From sequence record MG752970.1: a stretch of DNA of 64,000 bases. One strand, written 5' to 3'. Position 1 is the stretch's first letter. Each line of letters opens with the position of its first letter. This document shows, one piece after another, positions 21,610-58,293 of the stretch. The notes below the pieces were generated by a model that worked only from the letters and a program-made list of their open reading frames with translations, was not told the origin of the DNA and ran no database searches. The position numbers were made by a program, and so were the translations under genes.

Positions 21610-21634
21610 AAAGGGAGCAAAAAGCTCCCTTTTT
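21610..21634. terminator. bidirectional intrinsic terminator
   Basis: AAAGGGAGC-AAAAA-GCTCCCTTTTT between convergent genes. Confidence 0.75.
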
Positions 21635-21842: not shown

Positions 21843-21871
21843 ATTCTAACATGAAATCGGGAAAAGTACAA
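21843..21871 (-). promoter_or_regulatory. sigma70-type promoter
   Basis: minus strand TTGTAC-17 nt-TAGAAT. Confidence 0.7.
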
Positions 21872-22144
21872 TTACCTTTCTATTTTCTTAGCTTTTTGAT
21901 ATTCTTTTAGGCGGCGTTTGAGCTCAAATTTAACTGTTCTAGCCATTTCTCCATGCCAACCACCAGCATTGATCAGAAATCTGGAAACGATATCGTCAAC
22001 ATCATCGAGAAAATACTTGTCACCAATATTTCTGACATGAAGCAATGCCATGAGATATTCTCCAGCATGTGGATCAACCCGCTTCCAATCCAGTACCACC
22101 AAAGCTGCCAGTTCCTGGATAGAATACTTAGTAAGATCGATCAT
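21872..22144 (-). CDS. small hypothetical early protein
   Basis: MIDLTKYSIQEL..., GGAG RBS; start refined from 22201, which lies in a promoter. Confidence 0.7.
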   Translation of the reverse strand: MIDLTKYSIQELAALVVLDWKRVDPHAGEYLMALLHVRNIGDKYFLDDVDDIVSRFLINAGGWHGEMARTVKFELKRRLKEYQKAKKIER

Positions 22145-22171: not shown

Positions 22172-22201
22172 ATTATAAACTAATAACCTGGAAAAGTACA
22201 A
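22172..22201 (-). promoter_or_regulatory. sigma70-type promoter
   Basis: minus strand TTGTAC-18 nt-TATAAT; spacer starts TTTTCC as in the 21843 and 105 promoters. Confidence 0.7.
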
Positions 22202-22217
22202 TATTTACGCATACATG

Positions 22218-22223
22218 TAAATA
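22218..22223 (+). promoter_or_regulatory. TAAATA late-promoter-like box
   Basis: 23 nt upstream of P31 ATG 22247. Confidence 0.55.
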
Positions 22224-22246
22224 TGACATCGATAGGGAATATTCAC

Positions 22247-22879
22247 ATGAAGTTACGAGAAATTACTGAAAGGTCCATGCCCAATGAATGGAGGGATTGG
22301 TTATTACAAACTAATCAAAAATGGATGATGGGTTATGAAGGATCCCAGCAAGAGTGGATCCGAGACTATATGACTGGGGATACGTTCAACCTTGAATCGT
22401 TTGGAGGATTGACAATCTACGGACCAGCGAAATCTGATGAAAATTGGAATGACATGACGCGGCTTGAATTTGTACCACCCCCATTTAAACTTGGTAATCT
22501 CAGCAGCTTAACGGTTTTCAACCGCGATTTCTCAAATACGGGCATGTCATGGCTACCTGGAAAGTGTGAGAAACTGGAATTCGATAGATGCAAATTTCCT
22601 AAAGGATTTTTATCCACAGATTTAAATAAGGTGGGAGATCTGGAGCGTTTAGTTATTTCCGATTGCATTTTTCAAGATGGAGCGGCAGACATATTTGATC
22701 AAAACTATTCAGTGCAGCTCCATAATTATAGAGGATCATCTTCAAATCATCTCATCATCAATGGTCAGAATGGTGTAGGACGCGTCCTAATTAAGTTAGA
22801 GAGCCAACCATTCAACTTCAAGGACATTTTCGAACTTCAAGAATACTTGATGGATCACAGATTTCCGGATTTAGCATGA
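22247..22879 (+). CDS. paralog family member P31
   Basis: MKLREI...KLGNLSSLTVFNRDF..LPGKCEKLEFDRCKF..LERLVISDC (LRR-like)...DIFELQEYLMDHRFPDLA. Confidence 0.9.
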   Translation: MKLREITERSMPNEWRDWLLQTNQKWMMGYEGSQQEWIRDYMTGDTFNLESFGGLTIYGPAKSDENWNDMTRLEFVPPPFKLGNLSSLTVFNRDFSNTGMSWLPGKCEKLEFDRCKFPKGFLSTDLNKVGDLERLVISDCIFQDGAADIFDQNYSVQLHNYRGSSSNHLIINGQNGVGRVLIKLESQPFNFKDIFELQEYLMDHRFPDLA

Positions 22880-23457
22880 AACTACAAGAAATTACAAACA
22901 ACAATTCACCCGTTGGTGCCTGGATGGCCGCATGTGCTGATCGGGGATACACCACAACCATTGATAATAGACATCGCTTAGAAAATGGTGTCTTGCATAT
23001 TGACGGCAATTTACAAATTCGAAGTCATGGAAATCTTCCATTTCCACAAATGCCATTCAAACTTGGTGATGTAAAAATTCTGTTACTAAGAAATTTAGAT
23101 TTGACAGATAGTGATTTCAGTTGGCAACCCCAAAGCTGTGATCTTATAACTTTTGATTACTGTAAACTTCCAGAAATTAAGAACGAGTTATTTGGAAATG
23201 TTGGTGAGCTTGGAATTGATTCTCTCGAATCAGATATTCCTAGAATTTCCCATGATATGTACACAGAAGAATTTCCATTTATATATCGGCTGTACAAGCG
23301 CGTTGATGCCGGGATCCCAGAATTTTCTCTTACGGTTGAAGGAAGTTGGATACAGGTAACAGATGGAAATAATGAAATTAAATTTGATGATCTGTTTACT
23401 TTTCAAGATTATCTAACAAATCACCCAAACGAAAAATTGCAATCTTTAATGATATGA
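22876..23457 (+). CDS. paralog family member P32
   Basis: MKLQEI...DLFTFQDYLTNHPNEKL; core similar to P31. Confidence 0.9.
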   Translation: MKLQEITNNNSPVGAWMAACADRGYTTTIDNRHRLENGVLHIDGNLQIRSHGNLPFPQMPFKLGDVKILLLRNLDLTDSDFSWQPQSCDLITFDYCKLPEIKNELFGNVGELGIDSLESDIPRISHDMYTEEFPFIYRLYKRVDAGIPEFSLTVEGSWIQVTDGNNEIKFDDLFTFQDYLTNHPNEKLQSLMI

Positions 23458-24056
23458 AACTACAAGAAATAGCTGAAAAATCCACAGGTGAAATAATTGC
23501 TGACTGGATAGCATCCATGGAAGAACATGGCATCCATGTCGCACTTGGCAACGGCCCAAAATTTAATAGTGATGGAAACTTAGATGTTAATTATGTTTCA
23601 TTATCTGCTAGAAACAATCCGGTTTTATTAGATTCTTATTTTCCATTCAAACTCAATGTTGGGGTTATAGTAATTGACGGGTTGGATCTTACACAAACAA
23701 AATTTGAATTCATGAGTGAATATACGGATTCTGAAACCGTAAAACTGATACATTGCAAATGGCCACAAGAAATCACCGGTGACTGGCTATCCGTTCTGCT
23801 GCCCGCTGATGTAGAAATACATACATCAATGAACAACATTCCCAATCTTAAACATGACGTATGGGATGGAACCTTAATTTTCAGCATTAATCTGTATCAA
23901 GGTCATCATAAAATTTACACATTGGAATATACAGATGACGATGAGTTTATTTTTAGAGATTATGCAACTACCCGAAAAGTCTTCAACGACATATTCGATT
24001 TACAAGAATTCCTAGTATCATACAATGATGAGCGTTTACTACCATTAGTATCATGA
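23454..24056 (+). CDS. paralog family member P33
   Basis: MKLQEI...DIFDLQEFLVSYNDERL. Confidence 0.9.
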   Translation: MKLQEIAEKSTGEIIADWIASMEEHGIHVALGNGPKFNSDGNLDVNYVSLSARNNPVLLDSYFPFKLNVGVIVIDGLDLTQTKFEFMSEYTDSETVKLIHCKWPQEITGDWLSVLLPADVEIHTSMNNIPNLKHDVWDGTLIFSINLYQGHHKIYTLEYTDDDEFIFRDYATTRKVFNDIFDLQEFLVSYNDERLLPLVS

Positions 24057-25225
24057 ACTTTAAATCTTTCTTAAACATCAACAAGCTTTTTGAGGCCTAT
24101 GATTATCATGCAGACGACGATGCAGATAATGCCGATAAGTGGCTTGCGAAATGGACATATGAAGGCATTGACAAATACCCTAGCAATGAAATTCTAGACG
24201 AACTTAAAGAAAAATATCCATTTGATGGAGGCGTTGTTTATCGGGGATTAAATTTCCATGACAAGGAACAATACGACAAGTTCATGGACAGCACAAATGG
24301 TGGAACGATCCTACATACTGGATCAATTACAAGTTGGACCGAAAATGAGAAAACAACTTATCCATTTGCGGTTACGCGACCCACTTACTTTTTAAATCGA
24401 GAATTAATGCAGGCAGAAGATAAGAAAAATCGTGAACGTGATTTCATGATTGGACACGCAGGCTTAGTACTAGAAACTATTGTCAAACCTGGAAAAGGAA
24501 TTGACGTCAATAAATCCAAGTATGGAAAAGAAAGTGAAATTATTCTGGTGCCAGGTACTTACGAAATTAAAATTCACAAGCAGTATATTCCTTTCGTAAG
24601 ATCAATCAATGATGAGAACTTTAAGAAAAAGTTCATGTCAATTAATACGATAAGTGACAGAGAAGATGATCATCAGGCAAAAATGTTTGAACACATCATG
24701 TTCCATTACAAGGAATTTGATGATGAAATGAAACATCATTTGTTTGGATTGCTAATCAAGAACGTCACGAAGATCCACTATGGAGTTGAAGTTACTGAAG
24801 CAGCTGATTGGAATGGTAGCAAGTGGCCACAGATTGAAGTGTATTGGAATGTTCCACCAACATTCTTCATTTACTACAGCATGCTTCTTCCTGAGGATGC
24901 CAAAATAATCGACGATCAGCTTGATAAGATAATTGAATCTATCGAGCGCGATTTTGATGAGAAAACCAAGGGTATTGATTTCACTCACAAGTTTGAACTC
25001 GATATCAACAACTCAATTGCACTGGCAGTTAAGATGGAGCATCTAGAAAACAAACTTACTTTTATGAAGAAGATGCGACAGAACGTTGGCAAGAGATATA
25101 ACGAACTCAACTCGTATGAGGCTGTCAAGAAGATTAATGCCATCAAGGATCCCCAAAAACAACTTGATGCAATCAGAAAATTAGCAAAGGATCTTGAACA
25201 AGCTCTTAATCAAGGTAAATTCTAG
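24053..25225 (+). CDS. putative ADP-ribosyltransferase (R-S-E clade) with helical C-terminus
   Basis: VYRG...SITSWT...ESEIIL motifs in order; ATGA overlap with P33; N-term MNFKSFL..LFE. Confidence 0.6.
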   Translation: MNFKSFLNINKLFEAYDYHADDDADNADKWLAKWTYEGIDKYPSNEILDELKEKYPFDGGVVYRGLNFHDKEQYDKFMDSTNGGTILHTGSITSWTENEKTTYPFAVTRPTYFLNRELMQAEDKKNRERDFMIGHAGLVLETIVKPGKGIDVNKSKYGKESEIILVPGTYEIKIHKQYIPFVRSINDENFKKKFMSINTISDREDDHQAKMFEHIMFHYKEFDDEMKHHLFGLLIKNVTKIHYGVEVTEAADWNGSKWPQIEVYWNVPPTFFIYYSMLLPEDAKIIDDQLDKIIESIERDFDEKTKGIDFTHKFELDINNSIALAVKMEHLENKLTFMKKMRQNVGKRYNELNSYEAVKKINAIKDPQKQLDAIRKLAKDLEQALNQGKF

Positions 25226-25276: not shown

Positions 25277-25651
25277 TTACACTCGATACGCCGTGATGAA
25301 CTCAAGTAGAGGATCGAGTTCTGTCTTATCGATTCCCTTTTCGAGGAGCGTCTTCTTGGCATCGTTCTGATCGCCAACGCACAGCTCGTAAAGCTCTTCG
25401 TCAGTCAGAGAGTTCAACATTGCTTCCGATTTCGTAAGACGCTCAGACCCAAATTTTTCAAGAATCGAATCACCCAACTTCCAGTAATAATCCACATACG
25501 CCTTTTCAGCGGATGCTCCCAGTCCCGGGCTTTCACCGATTCTGCTGAAAGCCCCAACAGATTGTGCAATCCGAATAGAGCAATCAAGGATTTTTGGAAA
25601 TGCAGCTTGCGCGCGCAATTCCGTAATGGTGGTGATTTGATTATGAGACAT
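25277..25651 (-). CDS. hypothetical early protein
   Basis: MSHNQITT..., AAGGAG RBS; start refined from 25693. Confidence 0.7.
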   Translation of the reverse strand: MSHNQITTITELRAQAAFPKILDCSIRIAQSVGAFSRIGESPGLGASAEKAYVDYYWKLGDSILEKFGSERLTKSEAMLNSLTDEELYELCVGDQNDAKKTLLEKGIDKTELDPLLEFITAYRV

Positions 25652-25681
25652 GATTATCTCCTTCGGGTCATATGTGATTTC

Positions 25682-25710
25682 ATTATAGCACATGACCCAA
25701 AGTTTGTAAA
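25682..25710 (-). promoter_or_regulatory. sigma70-type promoter, extended -10
   Basis: minus strand TTTACA-17 nt-TATAAT with TG at -14. Confidence 0.7.
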
Positions 25711-46000: not shown

Positions 46001-49000
46001 CAGAATTCATCTAGTTTAGCGTCAATGAATCTAGCAGAGTTCAAAAACGCTGTAAGTGAGAAGTTAGATCCCTTATTTGAAACCAAACCCTTCCAGTATC
46101 CAAATTGTGATTTTAATGGAATATCTAAATCATCCATGTAGGATTTTCTAGAAAATCCTAGCAATCCCGTGGCAGCATTTTGTGATTCTGATCCATAGTA
46201 CATGTTATCAAAATCATAAAAGTTTTGTAGACCCTTAACAGATTGCTCGATGTTCTTCTTAACCTCATTGCCCTGGATATAGTAACCACCAAATGACAAT
46301 CTTCCCGTAAATTCAGACTGACGAGTGATGTCCATGTAAAGGCGTGGAATACGCAGTCCCAAGAATCCATCATACAGTAGATGCGATGCGGTTATATCGC
46401 CAGAGTAATCATCAAAGATGACAACGTGCTCATACTTGTCAAGCAACAAGTGCATGCCTGCCATAGGAACATCAGAGATAAACTTCGTTTGTTTATCTTC
46501 ACGAAGAATACGCATACGCTCTGGACGAATAGAACGTCCTAGAATATCATACACATACTGCGACGCGCTTCCATCAATAAATGATTTGTGTGTGAATCCA
46601 CTAACGACACCAGATGGAGTATTAAACCAAACCTTCTGTGCAAATGGATTCATTAGCAAGGCGTCACCTGGCTTTGCTCCAGTGTATAGAGCATTCAGGA
46701 ATTTTTCAATGTAGAATTGCCAGTCAACATAACGTCCCGTTGCTGGGTCAATACGTGAATCTTCAAATGAAGAGAATTGCCATCCATCTTCTTCAAGTTT
46801 TGCAACATAACCAAAGATGAAGTTCACCAAATTCTGGATTCCACGAACAACGAATGGCGTAGGAATTTCCTTAACGTCCAGAGTATTGGTGAATTTTTTG
46901 TACTCATCTGTTACGTTGACTCCATCGAAGGCCTTGAATGTGGTGTATGGACCTGATGTGTCAAGCTCGTAGTACTTAATAGATGGATGTTTAGGATTAA
47001 ATGTCTGAATCTTAAAAATCCAATCTTGACCTTGATGATCTGGTGCCGATAAACCATTTTGCATTTTCATTGCGCCAGTGCGACCAACCTGTACGCGAAT
47101 AGCATCCAACCATGAATCAGCAACGTACTTGTTATTCTTGATTACAAATGTATGATCTGCGCGGATCAAATCAAACGTGTCACTACGCATGGTGAGTGCT
47201 TCAGTATCCAGCAATCCACCAACTCTATATCCCAATTTTGCAGTCCAATTTCTCAATAAAGAATTGTTCTTACTAATTGTAGTATCTACTGAGTTATAGC
47301 GATTAAGGTTGACATACCACTGACATAGACCAAGCATTGGTTTTGTAGTTGGAACAGTCATGTTGGTTGCAGTACCAACTACGCTGATTTTAGTTCCAAC
47401 CAACATATCGTACGCGCCATCATAAAATCTAAATGATATTGCGTTTGAACCTTCAACGTAAATTCCAGAGTTGCCCATCATGTAAGCGACAATGGTGTTA
47501 TTCTTTCTCAACGCAAATACACCAGAGAATGATGTTGCAGTTGGGTAAACGTACAATAGTTGCAGTTCAAAGAATGCTGATGAATCAAACATGTTCTCTA
47601 TCACTTGAACATGTTGATCTCCCGAGAAGAATGGATCACGCTTGATCAATTCACCATGGAGAACCATGTTTACATGCGAATCCTTTCTGTGATATGTTCT
47701 ATCAACGTCATATCCGTTAGTAGACATTACGGTTGGGTTATGACCCCATGTCTTTTCAACAAAGTTTATTGGATCTAGAAGGAATGATACAATTACGTTA
47801 TCGTAATTGAATTCTATTGATTTTCTCCAAATTAACTCAATAGGACCATTTTCACCGAATGTGTATCTGTCAGACGCACCAGATGGAATGCTATTAAGCA
47901 ATGCCTCACTCGATAGCGATGAAGTAGGTGATACATATGGTGGCAACAATTCATCAGTTTGAGTATTCACTGAGAATGGTTTTGTCCAGGCACCAGTTGG
48001 AGCTGGATGGCCAGGTGTAGTGTTGTGACGAATGTCATACCACATCTGATCAGTCCACATGCGACCGGTCCCTTGCTTTTGAGATGCTTCCAAAGTGAGC
48101 AAGAGTTTAGCAACACCAGTTCGAGCAGATGTAAACGTGATCTTGACTCTATCTTCAGATACGTGATCAACTCCATCTGGCCATATTTGATATCCATCTT
48201 CATCAAATACCCGAACTATAGGCTCATATCCGTAGTTGTGAGTTATATCCCATACAACCGATGGAACTTCCTGAATGTATAATCCAGTTGAGTAATTCAA
48301 GCCTGGCGATGGCTTCGATACGCCCGAATATAGATCATTCCACCATGAAGGCTGAGTTGTGTAACCTTGAAGTTTCCATGGCTCAAGGTTAGGTCTAGGA
48401 GTTCCGTAATATTGCTCATAAATGTCATACCAGCGGGCAGTTCCCTGGGCTACACCCGGAATGGTAGCGTTGTGATAATTCCACGTAAATGCATCAGATG
48501 GCAGAAAATCCGTACCATACGCGTCTTGATTATACTTGCTCGCAAATTGTGCGAACTGATTTTCCAACAATGTGTTAAACTGCGTTGGCATCAATGCCTG
48601 ATATTGTGCAGCATTCCACTTAAGAAGGCTCGTACCAAATGTCGTGAAAAATCCAACTTGACGATACAGTCTTTGTTCTAGACTTAGAAGTAAAGAAGCG
48701 AAAATATTACTAATACTAATTTTCTTCCATGCCATTTCTTCTGGGCGTGAGTTCCATGCAGCGCCATCATATTGATAGAGCGTATCAGTAGATCTAGAAT
48801 ACCAGAAATCTCCAGGTTTAGCACCAGATGGAGCAACAGATTGGTCGCTTATGACATCAAAGCTCTTTAATATTCTAGCTACAGGATCATACCAGAATTG
48901 ATTTTTGTATGGACGAATTGGAAGATCTTGACCAATAGTTCCTTGTGTTTTTGTTCCATCGCTTCTTAAACGCTTCTCAGCCGCGATGTTTGCCATCAAA

Positions 49001-56090: not shown

Positions 56091-58293
56091 TTTTTGCCAC
56101 CTGTGATCCTGAACTTACGTCCATTGCGGTAAGGTATAGCTTCTGAATGAAGCTTCCACCGCTGAATATGTTTTCAATTTTGGTTCCCATATACCAACCA
56201 GTGTACCAGAATGGTACATCATATTTAGGGTTTTCTGGTGTTGAATCTTTCGATTTTGAATAGATGTTAATTTTCACCAGCAATGGGAAATTCAATTTGT
56301 AATCTTTAATTGTCTTAGACCCCGCGGCCCCTTCGAAAACTTTACGAGCCTCATCATTTATTTGCTTCATTTTTTGCTCGTATGCAGCGTTGTCGTGAGG
56401 ATAGATCGTTGGAATAATGCTGTCCATTAGATCTGGGTTACCTCTAATTGTCACACTAGTGTCAATGGAACTGAGAGCGGCAAACTGTGAAAGTGCTTGC
56501 ATGAATATTTGGGTTTCAGACATTTTTGTGTCACTCTGTACAGCCGTATTCCCTTTCTGGTTATCAGTTGACAACGTACTTGTATAAACTGGTGAATACG
56601 TGTTTATGTCATTTACTGCAGGATTCTTTTGATCAGAATCTGCTGGTGCTTTTCCATTTACAGGATCCGTTGCTGCAGCCGGTTTTTGTCCATCACTCGT
56701 CGATCTATTGATGTTTCTATTAAGCATCAATGCACCATGGATTAACTTCATATCGAAATGTATGATGTCACTATTCTTTCCAGAGAAAATATAATCATAC
56801 ACGTATCCGATTTCATCATACTTATCTTTTGTAATTTCCTTAGTACCAATGATTGTCTTTCCATTGTTGTCAGATGAAATTTTTGGAACAAAAAGATCGT
56901 TGATGTCTACGTGATATGTAACGGTCTCACTGTCACTCGTGACATTAGAAACTATTCTAAAAAATTCCATGTCATTGAAAGTGATCTTGCTTCCATCAAT
57001 CTTTGCTTTATCCGCAACTCTTTTAGCAATGTTTGGACAACGCTTTAGCATTTCCTTAATTGTCTGGTAAATGGTCATGTGAACAGACATATTGAAATAT
57101 GTCTTACCATTTTTTGTCGGTGCTGGCGGATCCGCATGTTCTGCGGCTTTTGCGTCCTGATTGGTAGATGGAGTAGCAGATTGCTGTCCAACATTTGCTT
57201 GTTGTGTATCTCTTTGCGCCTTAAGCTTTTCAACCTGATCCGTAATTGCAGTTATGTTTTTAGCCAGTTCAGCATTATTAGTCTGCAGTGTTTGAATTTG
57301 CGAGTCCACGTCTGGTGATTTATTCAATGCCTGAAGCTTTGTGATCTTCGCATTGTTACTCTCCATTTGAGACTGATATTGCGCTTTCTGCGTGTTTAAT
57401 CTGGTAATTTGATGATCTGTCTGCTGCGCGGAAATACTTTGAATACCCGACTGCTTCACAACCTCAACATTTGGATTCTTTCCTTTAGGAAATTTTTGTT
57501 CATCGTAATTATCATTTGTAGCAGAATCAATAACGTAATTGTCCCAGGATGTGGGAGTGTTAAAGTGATACCGAACTTTTCTTCCGCCAGAAGCTTTAAC
57601 CTTGCTGTACTCTTCTTCAAGTTCGTCGTTAAGCTTCTTTTCAAATGCCTTTACCATATCGGTAAGTTTATTTCCAGTGATAGCAAGAGCCCGATTACGC
57701 TTCACGTATCTTGTCTCAAATGTATCGTTTACAGGACCACCTCCTATACACACAAATGAAATGCTGTAGATACCACCGCTTTCATCCAATGTGGCGGTAA
57801 GATCAATCATCTGCATGTAAACATCACGGGTGTGAACACTTTGATCAGTGTTTCCATCTGGAGTTTGACCAACAAAGAAAATTTTCAGTCCAAAGACGGC
57901 ACCATTAGCTGATGTTTTTAACGTATCATTGAAGATCGATTGAAGATCATTCATGAAATTCACGCCACCAGGTTCTCTAACAACCATTCTAATAGGAGCA
58001 GCGATAATGAGTGCACCATCGGACGGATTACCACCGTAATTTGTGGTGTAGTTAACAGAATCTATGGTGTAAACTGAATCAATCATGGTGTTTAGCACCA
58101 CTGTAACCACATCAGTTGGTTTCGGACCTGTACGTATCAATGACCCAGAACCGCGGTTGTAAAAGCTGTCAAATCCACTATTTGCGGACGAATCGGTGAG
58201 AGTGCTAAGTGTCTCAGTATTGTTAGCAGCGTAAAGCAGAAAATGATATGAACAAGATTCAAACTTGTCCAATGGGTTGATTGGAAATGACAT
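56080..58293 (-). CDS. probable baseplate hub/tail protein with coiled-coil insert
   Basis: position between LysM and gp5-like genes; YDYIFSGKN, TIRGNPDL, IENIFSGG.F.Q.L. Confidence 0.55.
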   Translation of the reverse strand: MSFPINPLDKFESCSYHFLLYAANNTETLSTLTDSSANSGFDSFYNRGSGSLIRTGPKPTDVVTVVLNTMIDSVYTIDSVNYTTNYGGNPSDGALIIAAPIRMVVREPGGVNFMNDLQSIFNDTLKTSANGAVFGLKIFFVGQTPDGNTDQSVHTRDVYMQMIDLTATLDESGGIYSISFVCIGGGPVNDTFETRYVKRNRALAITGNKLTDMVKAFEKKLNDELEEEYSKVKASGGRKVRYHFNTPTSWDNYVIDSATNDNYDEQKFPKGKNPNVEVVKQSGIQSISAQQTDHQITRLNTQKAQYQSQMESNNAKITKLQALNKSPDVDSQIQTLQTNNAELAKNITAITDQVEKLKAQRDTQQANVGQQSATPSTNQDAKAAEHADPPAPTKNGKTYFNMSVHMTIYQTIKEMLKRCPNIAKRVADKAKIDGSKITFNDMEFFRIVSNVTSDSETVTYHVDINDLFVPKISSDNNGKTIIGTKEITKDKYDEIGYVYDYIFSGKNSDIIHFDMKLIHGALMLNRNINRSTSDGQKPAAATDPVNGKAPADSDQKNPAVNDINTYSPVYTSTLSTDNQKGNTAVQSDTKMSETQIFMQALSQFAALSSIDTSVTIRGNPDLMDSIIPTIYPHDNAAYEQKMKQINDEARKVFEGAAGSKTIKDYKLNFPLLVKINIYSKSKDSTPENPKYDVPFWYTGWYMGTKIENIFSGGSFIQKLYLTAMDVSSGSQVAKNGA

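Follow-up and report, generated by a model that had tools for sequence, protein, structure and literature searches.

T4 Alt is the established case of an ADP-ribosyltransferase (ART) that is packaged in a phage and injected into the host. Alt loses six residues through a cut at ITE-6, and gp21 of T4 cleaves after L/I-x-E (PMC9026906, PMC5694885). The first ten residues of the T4 internal protein (IP) IPIII are enough to direct a protein into the head; residues 4 and 7 control targeting, and residues 8 and 10 control processing (PMC9026906, PMC5694885); the targeting and processing determinants in the T4 leader were mapped by Mullaney and Black (PMC9026906). Leaders encoded in the T4 genome read MKTFKEF.. 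in IPI, MKTYQEFIAE in IPII and IPIII, and MELITELFDE in Alt. Packaging and injection of ARTs have been proposed by Iyer et al. (2022) as general or widespread in myoviruses (PMC9503650). The subject of this analysis is RsoM2USA_337, a gene of Ralstonia phage RsoM2USA, a jumbo myovirus (MG752970.1, 343,806 bp). It lies in a 64,000-nucleotide stretch of that genome, hereafter the window, whose coordinates are those of the record minus 186,000. Its product is very probably an ART-fold enzyme, and we lean slightly towards the view that it is packaged and injected as Alt is.

RsoM2USA_337, labelled ‘hypothetical protein’ in GenBank, consists of a leader, an ART domain and a C-terminal domain without a known fold match. 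Its features, in window coordinates, are:

24053..25225, plus strand: RsoM2USA_337 (AVH85265.1), 390 amino acids (aa), from the list of open reading frames (ORFs) and identical to MG752970.1 210053-211225
24053..24056, plus strand: ATGA start/stop overlap of RsoM2USA_337 with the last ~200-aa paralog (23454-24056), read from the sequence and present also in relatives L004 and L005
24053..24094, plus strand: N-terminal leader, aa 1-14, MNFKSFLNINKLFE, resembling a T4 capsid-targeting sequence and ending in a gp21-type L-x-E site (LFE-14), from comparison with T4 leaders
24122..24604, plus strand: predicted ADP-ribosyltransferase domain of the R-S-E clade, aa 24-184, from structure searches of predicted models
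24242..24244, plus strand: codon of R64 (VYRG, strand 60-68), the predicted NAD-binding arginine (NAD, nicotinamide adenine dinucleotide), invariant in a 32-sequence alignment and present in 165 of 170 family members
24329..24337, plus strand: T93-S94-W95 (strand 93-96, then helix 99-107), putative counterpart of S-T-S, with S94 invariant in the 32-sequence alignment and present in 163 of 172 members
24530..24538, plus strand: E160-S-E162, predicted ExE catalytic motif after a loop resembling the ADP-ribosylating turn-turn (ARTT) loop and directly before strand 163-165, both Glu invariant in the 32-sequence alignment
24620..25222, plus strand: C-terminal domain, aa 190-390, with helices, a beta-hairpin sheet and a terminal helical hairpin, modelled as a separate domain (predicted local distance difference test, pLDDT, 94.1)

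A metagenomic orthologue, 93% identical to RsoM2USA_337 in amino acids and 83.5% in DNA, allows a direct comparison. Codon differences comprise 144 synonymous and 28 non-synonymous changes, which marks the ORF as a genuine gene on which purifying selection acts strongly; third positions hold 159 of the 193 base differences. The first 22 residues are identical despite the 16.5% nucleotide divergence, and the overlap at the start, in which the ATG (24053-24055) shares bases with the TGA (24054-24056) of the preceding 200-aa paralog, is unchanged. Translation of RsoM2USA_337 is probably coupled through this ATGA to that of the last paralog. The initial annotation, made from the bare sequence, had called the product a probable ART from the strings VYRG, ITSWT and ESEIIL in R-S-E order and spacing, and had pointed to the ATGA overlap and an MNFKSF..LFE N-terminus. 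Each of these observations stands: the motifs exceed chance, their residues being 95–100% conserved in 176 family members, the overlap and the N-terminus are both kept in the 93% orthologue, and the ART assignment is now backed by three structure searches and by the fact that R, S and ExE are conserved throughout the family.

An AlphaFold2 model of RsoM2USA_337, built on the 32-sequence alignment, has a pLDDT of 88 and a predicted template-modelling score of 0.74, and pLDDT falls below 50 for residues 1-14 only. When this model was compared with 48,161 PDB chains by VIA-align, 22 of the 23 best rows were ARTs aligned over model residues 24-184. The leading rows, with the root-mean-square deviation (rmsd) of each, are:

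6drh_B, Tre1 (Serratia): Z 7.6, 122 aligned residues, rmsd 3.3 Å
3u0j_A, HopU1 (Pseudomonas syringae): Z 7.6, 139 aligned residues, rmsd 3.6 Å
4xzj_A, Vis (Vibrio): Z 7.5, 130 aligned residues, rmsd 3.6 Å
1r45_A, C3bot2: Z 7.2, 125 aligned residues, rmsd 3.4 Å

Listed next are XopAI, SpvB, an iota-like toxin, VIP2, ExoS, an ART-ARH toxin, TreX, ART2.2, C3stau2, Certhrax, C2-I, Scabin, pertussis toxin, C3larvin and diphtheria toxin. Foldseek placed HopU1 first among PDB matches with a probability of 1.00; in BFVD the structure matched ARTs from phages, ART fusions to MuF and portal proteins, and an arginine-modifying ART from cyanophage S-PM2. A structure search of the ESM Atlas, which used the Atlas’s own, less confident model (mean pLDDT 0.63), reached clusters carrying PF03496, PF01129 and DRAT. 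Of the three structure searches, two were made on one AlphaFold model and one on the ESM Atlas model. A structure search against ART families had been suggested, and the split beta-sheet fold of ARTs is what these searches found. The case carries weight because the match list is a single superfamily covering the whole domain, to which the motifs are added.

The motifs follow one another along the domain as VYRG (aa 62-65), ITSW (aa 92-95) and ESEIIL (aa 160-165). Y63-R64-G65, on strand 60-68, supplies the aromatic-Arg feature of R-S-E ARTs. The second motif, [ST]-S-W, is a putative variant of S-T-S, placed in the predicted structure on strand 93-96 ahead of helix 99-107, and position 93 is S or T in 161 of 172 family members. 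The third, ExE, precedes [VI]-I-L-x-P-G in this family, which is also the case in Alt and in the iota/VIP2 family. Of the 176 members, 97% keep R64, 95% S94, 98% E160 (172 of 175) and 97% E162 (170 of 175); with G65 and W95 included, the range is 95–100%. Residues invariant in the 32-sequence alignment are R64, G65, S94, W95, F105, T108, Y112, G134, G137, S155, E160, E162, G168 and N362. Glutamine is absent from the five commonest residues at position 160 in the 176-member family. In characterised ARTs, ExE goes with arginine, and QxE with asparagine or DNA; by this analogy, an ExE motif lacking a Q variant among its commonest residues suggests arginine as the acceptor. Taken with the model, these data make it highly probable that RsoM2USA_337 is an ART-fold enzyme with intact catalytic residues, and we read it as a new sequence family inside a known enzyme superfamily.

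This family is large. A word-index search gave 33 homologues, and an exhaustive profile search of 1.84 billion representatives gave 483 clusters (50% identity) at E ≤1e-3, 184 of them at ≤1e-30. Members are nearly all 355-410 aa long, match end to end, and are named ‘hypothetical protein’ in every source record inspected. Among 50,697 GenBank phage genomes, a match was found in RsoM2USA only. All homologue contexts examined look like large phage, on contigs of up to 419 and 718 kb that hold many small ORFs and scattered nucleotide-metabolism genes. In three unrelated large-phage contigs, NUDIX hydrolase genes lie 2-9 kb from the ART homologue (P0010, on the 718-kb contig; L007, 7735-8271; L008, 19037-19513). 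The 718-kb contig (P0010) also has a NAD kinase gene 5 kb from the homologue, and L007 has an ARPP-1 family gene; such neighbours may serve NAD/ADP-ribose housekeeping.

The C-terminal domain (aa 190-390) is conserved across the family, including Y349, I361 and N362, and resembles no described fold in the databases compared: the best PDB match by VIA-align reached Z 5.7 over 45-residue generic helical hairpins, and feature and structure searches of the Atlas gave no usable match. A KwaB-like match in its helices (E 0.0013, below the cut-off) was dismissed. The domain would most likely select the target, with regulation as another possible role. Some family members carry additional N-terminal domains: a GNAT acetyltransferase in several (P0002, P0005, P0008, P0154), a sigma-70 region-4-like helix-turn-helix at about the Pfam cut-off in P0042, and DUF5661 in P0045. 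In the 822-aa P0052, the family domain stands behind a match to ART-PolyVal (PF18760) of 28.3 bits, below the Pfam cut-off of 31.2 bits. ART-PolyVal is a domain of polyvalent proteins that are predicted to be injected (PMC9503650), and the T4 ARTs and the GNAT protein Rac of phiKMV both modify the alpha subunit of RNA polymerase (PMC7824862). The fusions are weak hints that may point to the transcription machinery as the target and to polyvalent proteins that are injected.

The evidence on delivery begins at the N-terminus. The leader MNFKSFLNINKLFE has aromatic residues three apart, then L, then LFE-14, and its L-F-E (residues 12-14) is the exact end of the low-confidence segment of the RsoM2USA_337 model. 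Similar N-termini recur in the family, either as MKTFKQFISE, MITFKSFLFE and MSTFYQFLVE or as MKIHELLEA, MKYSELFED and MKFTELFED; the N-terminal region is the most variable part of the family alignment. Among 128 complete family N-termini, a strict IP-like pattern (aromatic-x-x-aromatic-[LI]-x-E) occurs in 17, against 0.09 expected when residues 2-25 are shuffled, and an Alt/gp24-like pattern occurs in another 17, against 0.16 expected. More broadly, [LI]xE is found within the first 12 residues of 58% of these N-termini, compared with 12% of shuffles and 13% of the other ORFs of RsoM2USA.

The same leader type is found elsewhere in RsoM2USA. Its FK.[FY][LI] core occurs 21 times in the 106,819 residues of the phage, and in 11 cases it falls inside the initial 12 residues of an ORF. 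Among its carriers are ORFs with the starts MKTFKQFLSE, MQTFKQFLSE, MNQTFKQFLTE, MKTFKLFLSE, MTTFKEYLTE and MAMNFKEFLNE, a set to which the MNFKSFLN of RsoM2USA_337 is close. Beyond the leader, RsoM2USA_337 and at least two other bearers have no similarity to any other bearer, and some pairs are distantly related. At least six further leader ORFs lie in MG752970.1, at 47317-48027 (plus strand), 57328-57867 (minus), 66030-66791 (minus), 165072-165797 (minus), 263233-263730 (minus) and 272220-273137 (plus), and one of these six adjoins the head module. No Pfam domain was found in the other leader-bearing ORFs of RsoM2USA. Judged by their N-termini, these ORFs are candidates for packaged proteins.

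In RsoM2USA, a head module of the T4 type is recognised by Portal_T4 (3.8e-93) and Gp23 (2.2e-97), and a gp21-like Peptidase_S77 is recognised both in a six-frame search (2.5e-30) and in the annotated protein (4.8e-24):

record 257102-262521: RsoM2USA_378-383, a head module in T4 order (portal, gp21-like protease, two small ORFs, scaffold-like protein, gp23-like capsid protein), all ‘hypothetical’ in GenBank

The scaffold-like protein between the protease and capsid genes has 22 [LI]xE motifs in 289 aa. The capsid protein has LFE-5, LLE-16, LLE-31 and IAE-40, that is, four [LI]xE in the 51 residues before the Gp23 domain. The annotated protease start (259178) is perhaps too far downstream, as the six-frame match starts at 259145 in a 210-aa open frame.

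With slightly better than balanced confidence, we favour an active R-S-E mono-ADP-ribosyltransferase that is packaged and injected like Alt. RsoM2USA_337 would be the final gene translated from a short operon whose other genes are fast-evolving paralogs. Its leader would load it into the prohead core, where a gp21-type protease would trim it at L-x-E, and the trimmed enzyme would be ejected with the DNA into Ralstonia, where, like T4 Alt, it would modify host machinery as soon as infection begins. In the host, NAD+ would be bound within residues 24-184 by R64 and the strand that holds T93-S94, and E160-x-E162 would transfer ADP-ribose to an acceptor that, by analogy with characterised ExE enzymes, is likely an arginine of a host protein. 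It is the T4-like leader, with its L-x-E site for the phage’s own gp21-type protease, from which we infer that the protein is probably packaged, trimmed and ejected. Packaging and injection of RsoM2USA_337 stand evenly between yes and no; the three steps of packaging, cleavage and injection are likewise about evenly poised when its identity as an ART is taken as given.

The operon in question lies upstream of the gene, and its features in the window are:

22223..24056, plus strand: three ~200-aa paralogs (22223-22879, 22876-23457 and 23454-24056), from the ORF list, each found by the paralog hidden Markov model (HMM) at E 1e-36 to 1e-39
21610..21632, on both strands: bidirectional terminator-like hairpin between the preceding paralog run and the four-gene unit, from a consensus scan (9-bp stem, 5 GC pairs), in a window where the number of terminator-like sites is not above shuffle expectation

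The paralogs are joined to each other and to RsoM2USA_337 by 4-nt overlaps, forming a four-gene run (22223-25225) that is the last co-directional run; in the block as a whole, almost every gene is linked by such a 4-nt overlap. A convergent 138-aa ORF, RsoM2USA_338 (25277-25693, minus strand), follows directly downstream of the ART gene; it has no PADLOC match, and no terminator-like site was predicted between the two genes. A scan for sigma-70-like promoters gave counts not above shuffle expectation, and the T4 late promoter TATAAATA was neither enriched nor present near the operon. The 13-mer GGAAAAGTACAAT occurs twice, 330 bp apart (21858-21872 and 22188-22203), each time just upstream of a small minus-strand ORF, and the genome has just three other copies, each with one mismatch. 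It was rejected as a genome-wide promoter motif, being a local repeat, and is either a local duplication or a local regulatory site.

The ~200-aa paralog family has about 58 copies in RsoM2USA by profile search and makes up more than 10% of the genome. Most copies lie at 171-215 kb of the record, spanning 2617-28702 of the window (record 171.5-214.7 kb), with outliers at 47, 66, 116 and 154 kb. The proteins start with MKLxEI and end in F-[DE]-L-Q-[DE]-W-L-I-x-N-G-F-E-x-L, and the family has no match in Pfam, PHROG or PDB. A close relative of RsoM2USA has still more copies, and there too the last of them is coupled to the ART. In amino acids, the neighbouring paralog is 63.5% identical between these two phages, and the ART 93%. 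The paralog HMM found no member in the sequence flanking distant ART homologues (L002 and L006-L008, 8-10 kb to either side; L030-L043, 3 kb). The association of paralogs and ART is lineage-specific, because the paralogs are absent from distant flanks and diverge faster than the ART. Comparison of the ART family with the paralog family by hhalign gave one 24-column N-terminal match (P = 0.012, probability 3.5%), suggestive at most. Since the MKLxE-I of the paralogs contains an L-x-E site at residue 5, a delivery route shared with the ART is possible from the sequences.

Several results weigh against the favoured reading and bear on its rivals. In sequence searches, RsoM2USA_337 had no ART match in Pfam, PHROGs, NCBIfam or PADLOC: no ART family appeared at E ≤1 in Pfam/NCBIfam or at ≤0.1 in PHROGs, and unmatched curated models include PF03496, PF01129, PF18760 and PF26816. 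The profile search that the initial annotation had proposed thus returned no recognised ART family (Pfam, PHROGs, NCBIfam), and PDB was blank by sequence and by profile. The 32 family members together gave a single weak match to an ART model (DRAT, E 0.022). T4 Alt matches PF03496 at 5.8e-36 and RsoM2USA_337 does not; the family profile, aligned with Alt by hhalign from the 32-sequence alignment, gave a non-significant probability of 0.9%. Z scores between 7 and 8 count as moderate and can be common among unmatched models. The proposed overlay of R64, S94 and E162 on ART catalytic residues was read in the model from strand position rather than from superposed coordinates. A protein with an ART fold may also perform other chemistry or act on another substrate, as an NADase that would deplete or reshape the NAD+ pool, an ART of nucleic acids (DarT, pierisin or Scabin type) or, like ModB, an RNAylating enzyme. 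Structural neighbours of this kind are present, including Scabin (5ewk, Z 5.8), Tpt1/KptA-like enzymes (9ld3, 7kw9) and diphtheria-like toxins; the phage has a NadM-like ORF22 for NAD+ salvage and a sirtuin-like ORF112 (PMC8504454), and the NUDIX genes near homologues in three distant contexts, with NAD kinase in one, fit the same reading. The best matches, however, are protein-arginine ARTs with ExE (Tre1, HopU1, Vis, VIP2, iota-like, SpvB), and the 98% conservation of the first Glu, at a position where Q is not among the commonest residues, also speaks against it, so that we consider a different chemistry improbable.

A stronger rival, if still somewhat unlikely, accepts the same motifs, model and PDB matches and proposes an active ART that is made after infection, like T4 ModA and ModB, and that, for example, reprogrammes transcription or translation or counters defence; the likeness of the leader would then be coincidental or otherwise used. 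The gene belongs to an extended block of small non-structural genes that share one direction, and this block runs opposite to the tail module (29-60 kb of the window). RsoM2USA_337 is not among the ten proteins reported by SDS-polyacrylamide gel electrophoresis and mass spectrometry of the virion, for which only the bands of highest abundance were cut out (PMC8504454). Its leader has Ile, not Glu, at the equivalent of T4 position 10, with L-F-E four residues later. Five long homologue contigs from IMG/VR (119-310 kb, 34-76% complete) gave no gp21/S77 protease (PF03420) and only weak Gp23 matches. The family N-termini are related, so the enrichment counts do not represent independent events. 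Against synthesis after infection, the leader is sharply enriched both in the family and in the phage’s own N-termini, is fully conserved in the orthologue, is the one stretch that the model predicts with low confidence and stops right at L-x-E, and the phage carries the matching protease. The Alt-like, packaged and injected enzyme that was first envisaged gains circumstantial support from the T4-type head module, the gp21-like protease and the likeness of the leader, and no sequence homology to Alt was detected. The initial annotation had also offered some paralogs as partners or inhibitors of the enzyme. In its fuller form, this idea has the ART and the ~200-aa proteins work together as a pair or a complex, in which the paralogs would be adaptors, inhibitors or immunity proteins and the coupling would set their stoichiometry. 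The ATGA overlap is kept in the close relative, ART toxins often adjoin immunity proteins (the matches include Tre1-Tri1 and TreX-TriX structures), and hhalign gives the 24-column N-terminal similarity. Yet the paralog family, for all its copies in RsoM2USA, has no member beside any distant homologue examined (flanks of 3-10 kb on each side), the ART is single-copy and slow where the neighbouring paralog changes quickly, and 4-nt overlaps are general in the block rather than specific to this pair; the idea finds no support, and we regard it as very improbable.

Returning to the packaged and injected ART, a broader version of it can be formulated. The T4-like leader would be a general address label in RsoM2USA and related giant phages, by which the ART, unrelated leader proteins and possibly the ~58 paralogs are co-injected; in the MKLxE-I paralogs, the L-x-E at residue 5 is placed much as Alt carries ITE at residue 6. 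RsoM2USA_337 would be the conserved enzyme of a diversifying effector set, and its C-terminal domain a new module for host-target recognition. We hold this extension to be doubtful.

As far as could be checked, what seems to be new is an ART family, large and so far unannotated, that has a sequence signature of its own and a C-terminal domain matching no known fold. Also apparently new are the single cultured representative of this family and the recurrence of a T4-like leader both on these ARTs and on proteins unrelated to them in a jumbo phage very distant from T4. A testable function is thereby attached to a family of at least 483 clusters (50% identity) that is detected by no curated model. 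RsoM2USA, a cultured phage of a crop pathogen, is the one tractable system for the family, because it is the sole carrier among the GenBank phage genomes searched. The logic of T4 capsid targeting and prohead proteolysis is suggested to operate in very distant giant phages; if this is true, injected proteins become predictable from sequence. If RsoM2USA_337 is injected, the ART would be an enzyme of first-minute host take-over or counter-defence, and the C-terminal domain a new target-recognition fold.

T4 Alt is one of the closest known systems. Alt and, by prediction, RsoM2USA_337 are R-S-ExE ARTs of myoviruses with a T4-type head (gp20, gp21 and gp23 homologues), and their local strings correspond: LYRS, VSTSL and EMEVILPRG in Alt, and VYRG, ITSWT and ESEIILVPG in RsoM2USA_337. 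The spacing is close, with 30 residues from R to S and 66-68 from S to E in RsoM2USA_337, compared with 25-27 and about 71 in Alt. Both have a short leader, putative in RsoM2USA_337, with L/I-x-E, which reads MELITE|LFDE in Alt, MKYSELFED or MKFTELFED in the family, and ...KLFE|A, with the cut as predicted, in RsoM2USA_337. The proteins differ in architecture: Alt has 682 aa, with a long N-terminal region and the ART near the C-terminus, whereas RsoM2USA_337 has 390 aa and places the ART ahead of a novel C-terminal domain. For RsoM2USA_337, packaging and cleavage are predicted and the target is conjectural. The T4 internal proteins IPI, IPII and IPIII have leaders that are alike in their aromatic residues three apart, L/I and Glu; they are small basic cargo, in contrast to a 43-kDa enzyme whose leader has Ile at the Glu-10 position and L-F-E four residues on.

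The bacterial R-S-E effectors (Tre1, HopU1, Vis, clostridial C3, VIP2/iota) provide the best whole-domain matches (Z 6.7-7.6, rmsd 3.3-3.8 Å over 122-139 residues) and apparently share the catalytic arrangement of R, S-T-S and ExE. They are 11-18% identical to RsoM2USA_337, which has [ST]-S-W in place of S-T-S, a ~28-residue insertion with a helix (aa 108-135) after the motif helix, and an unrelated C-terminal domain. These effectors are delivered by type III or type VI secretion systems or as binary toxins, whereas the phage head is the proposed vehicle of RsoM2USA_337. The MuF/portal-ART fusions and ART-PolyVal (Iyer et al. 2017, 2022) embody the same concept of a virion-carried, injected ART, and such fusions are among the BFVD and Atlas neighbours; in contrast to them, RsoM2USA_337 matches neither PF18760 nor PF03496 and is a stand-alone protein with a short, putatively cleavable leader.

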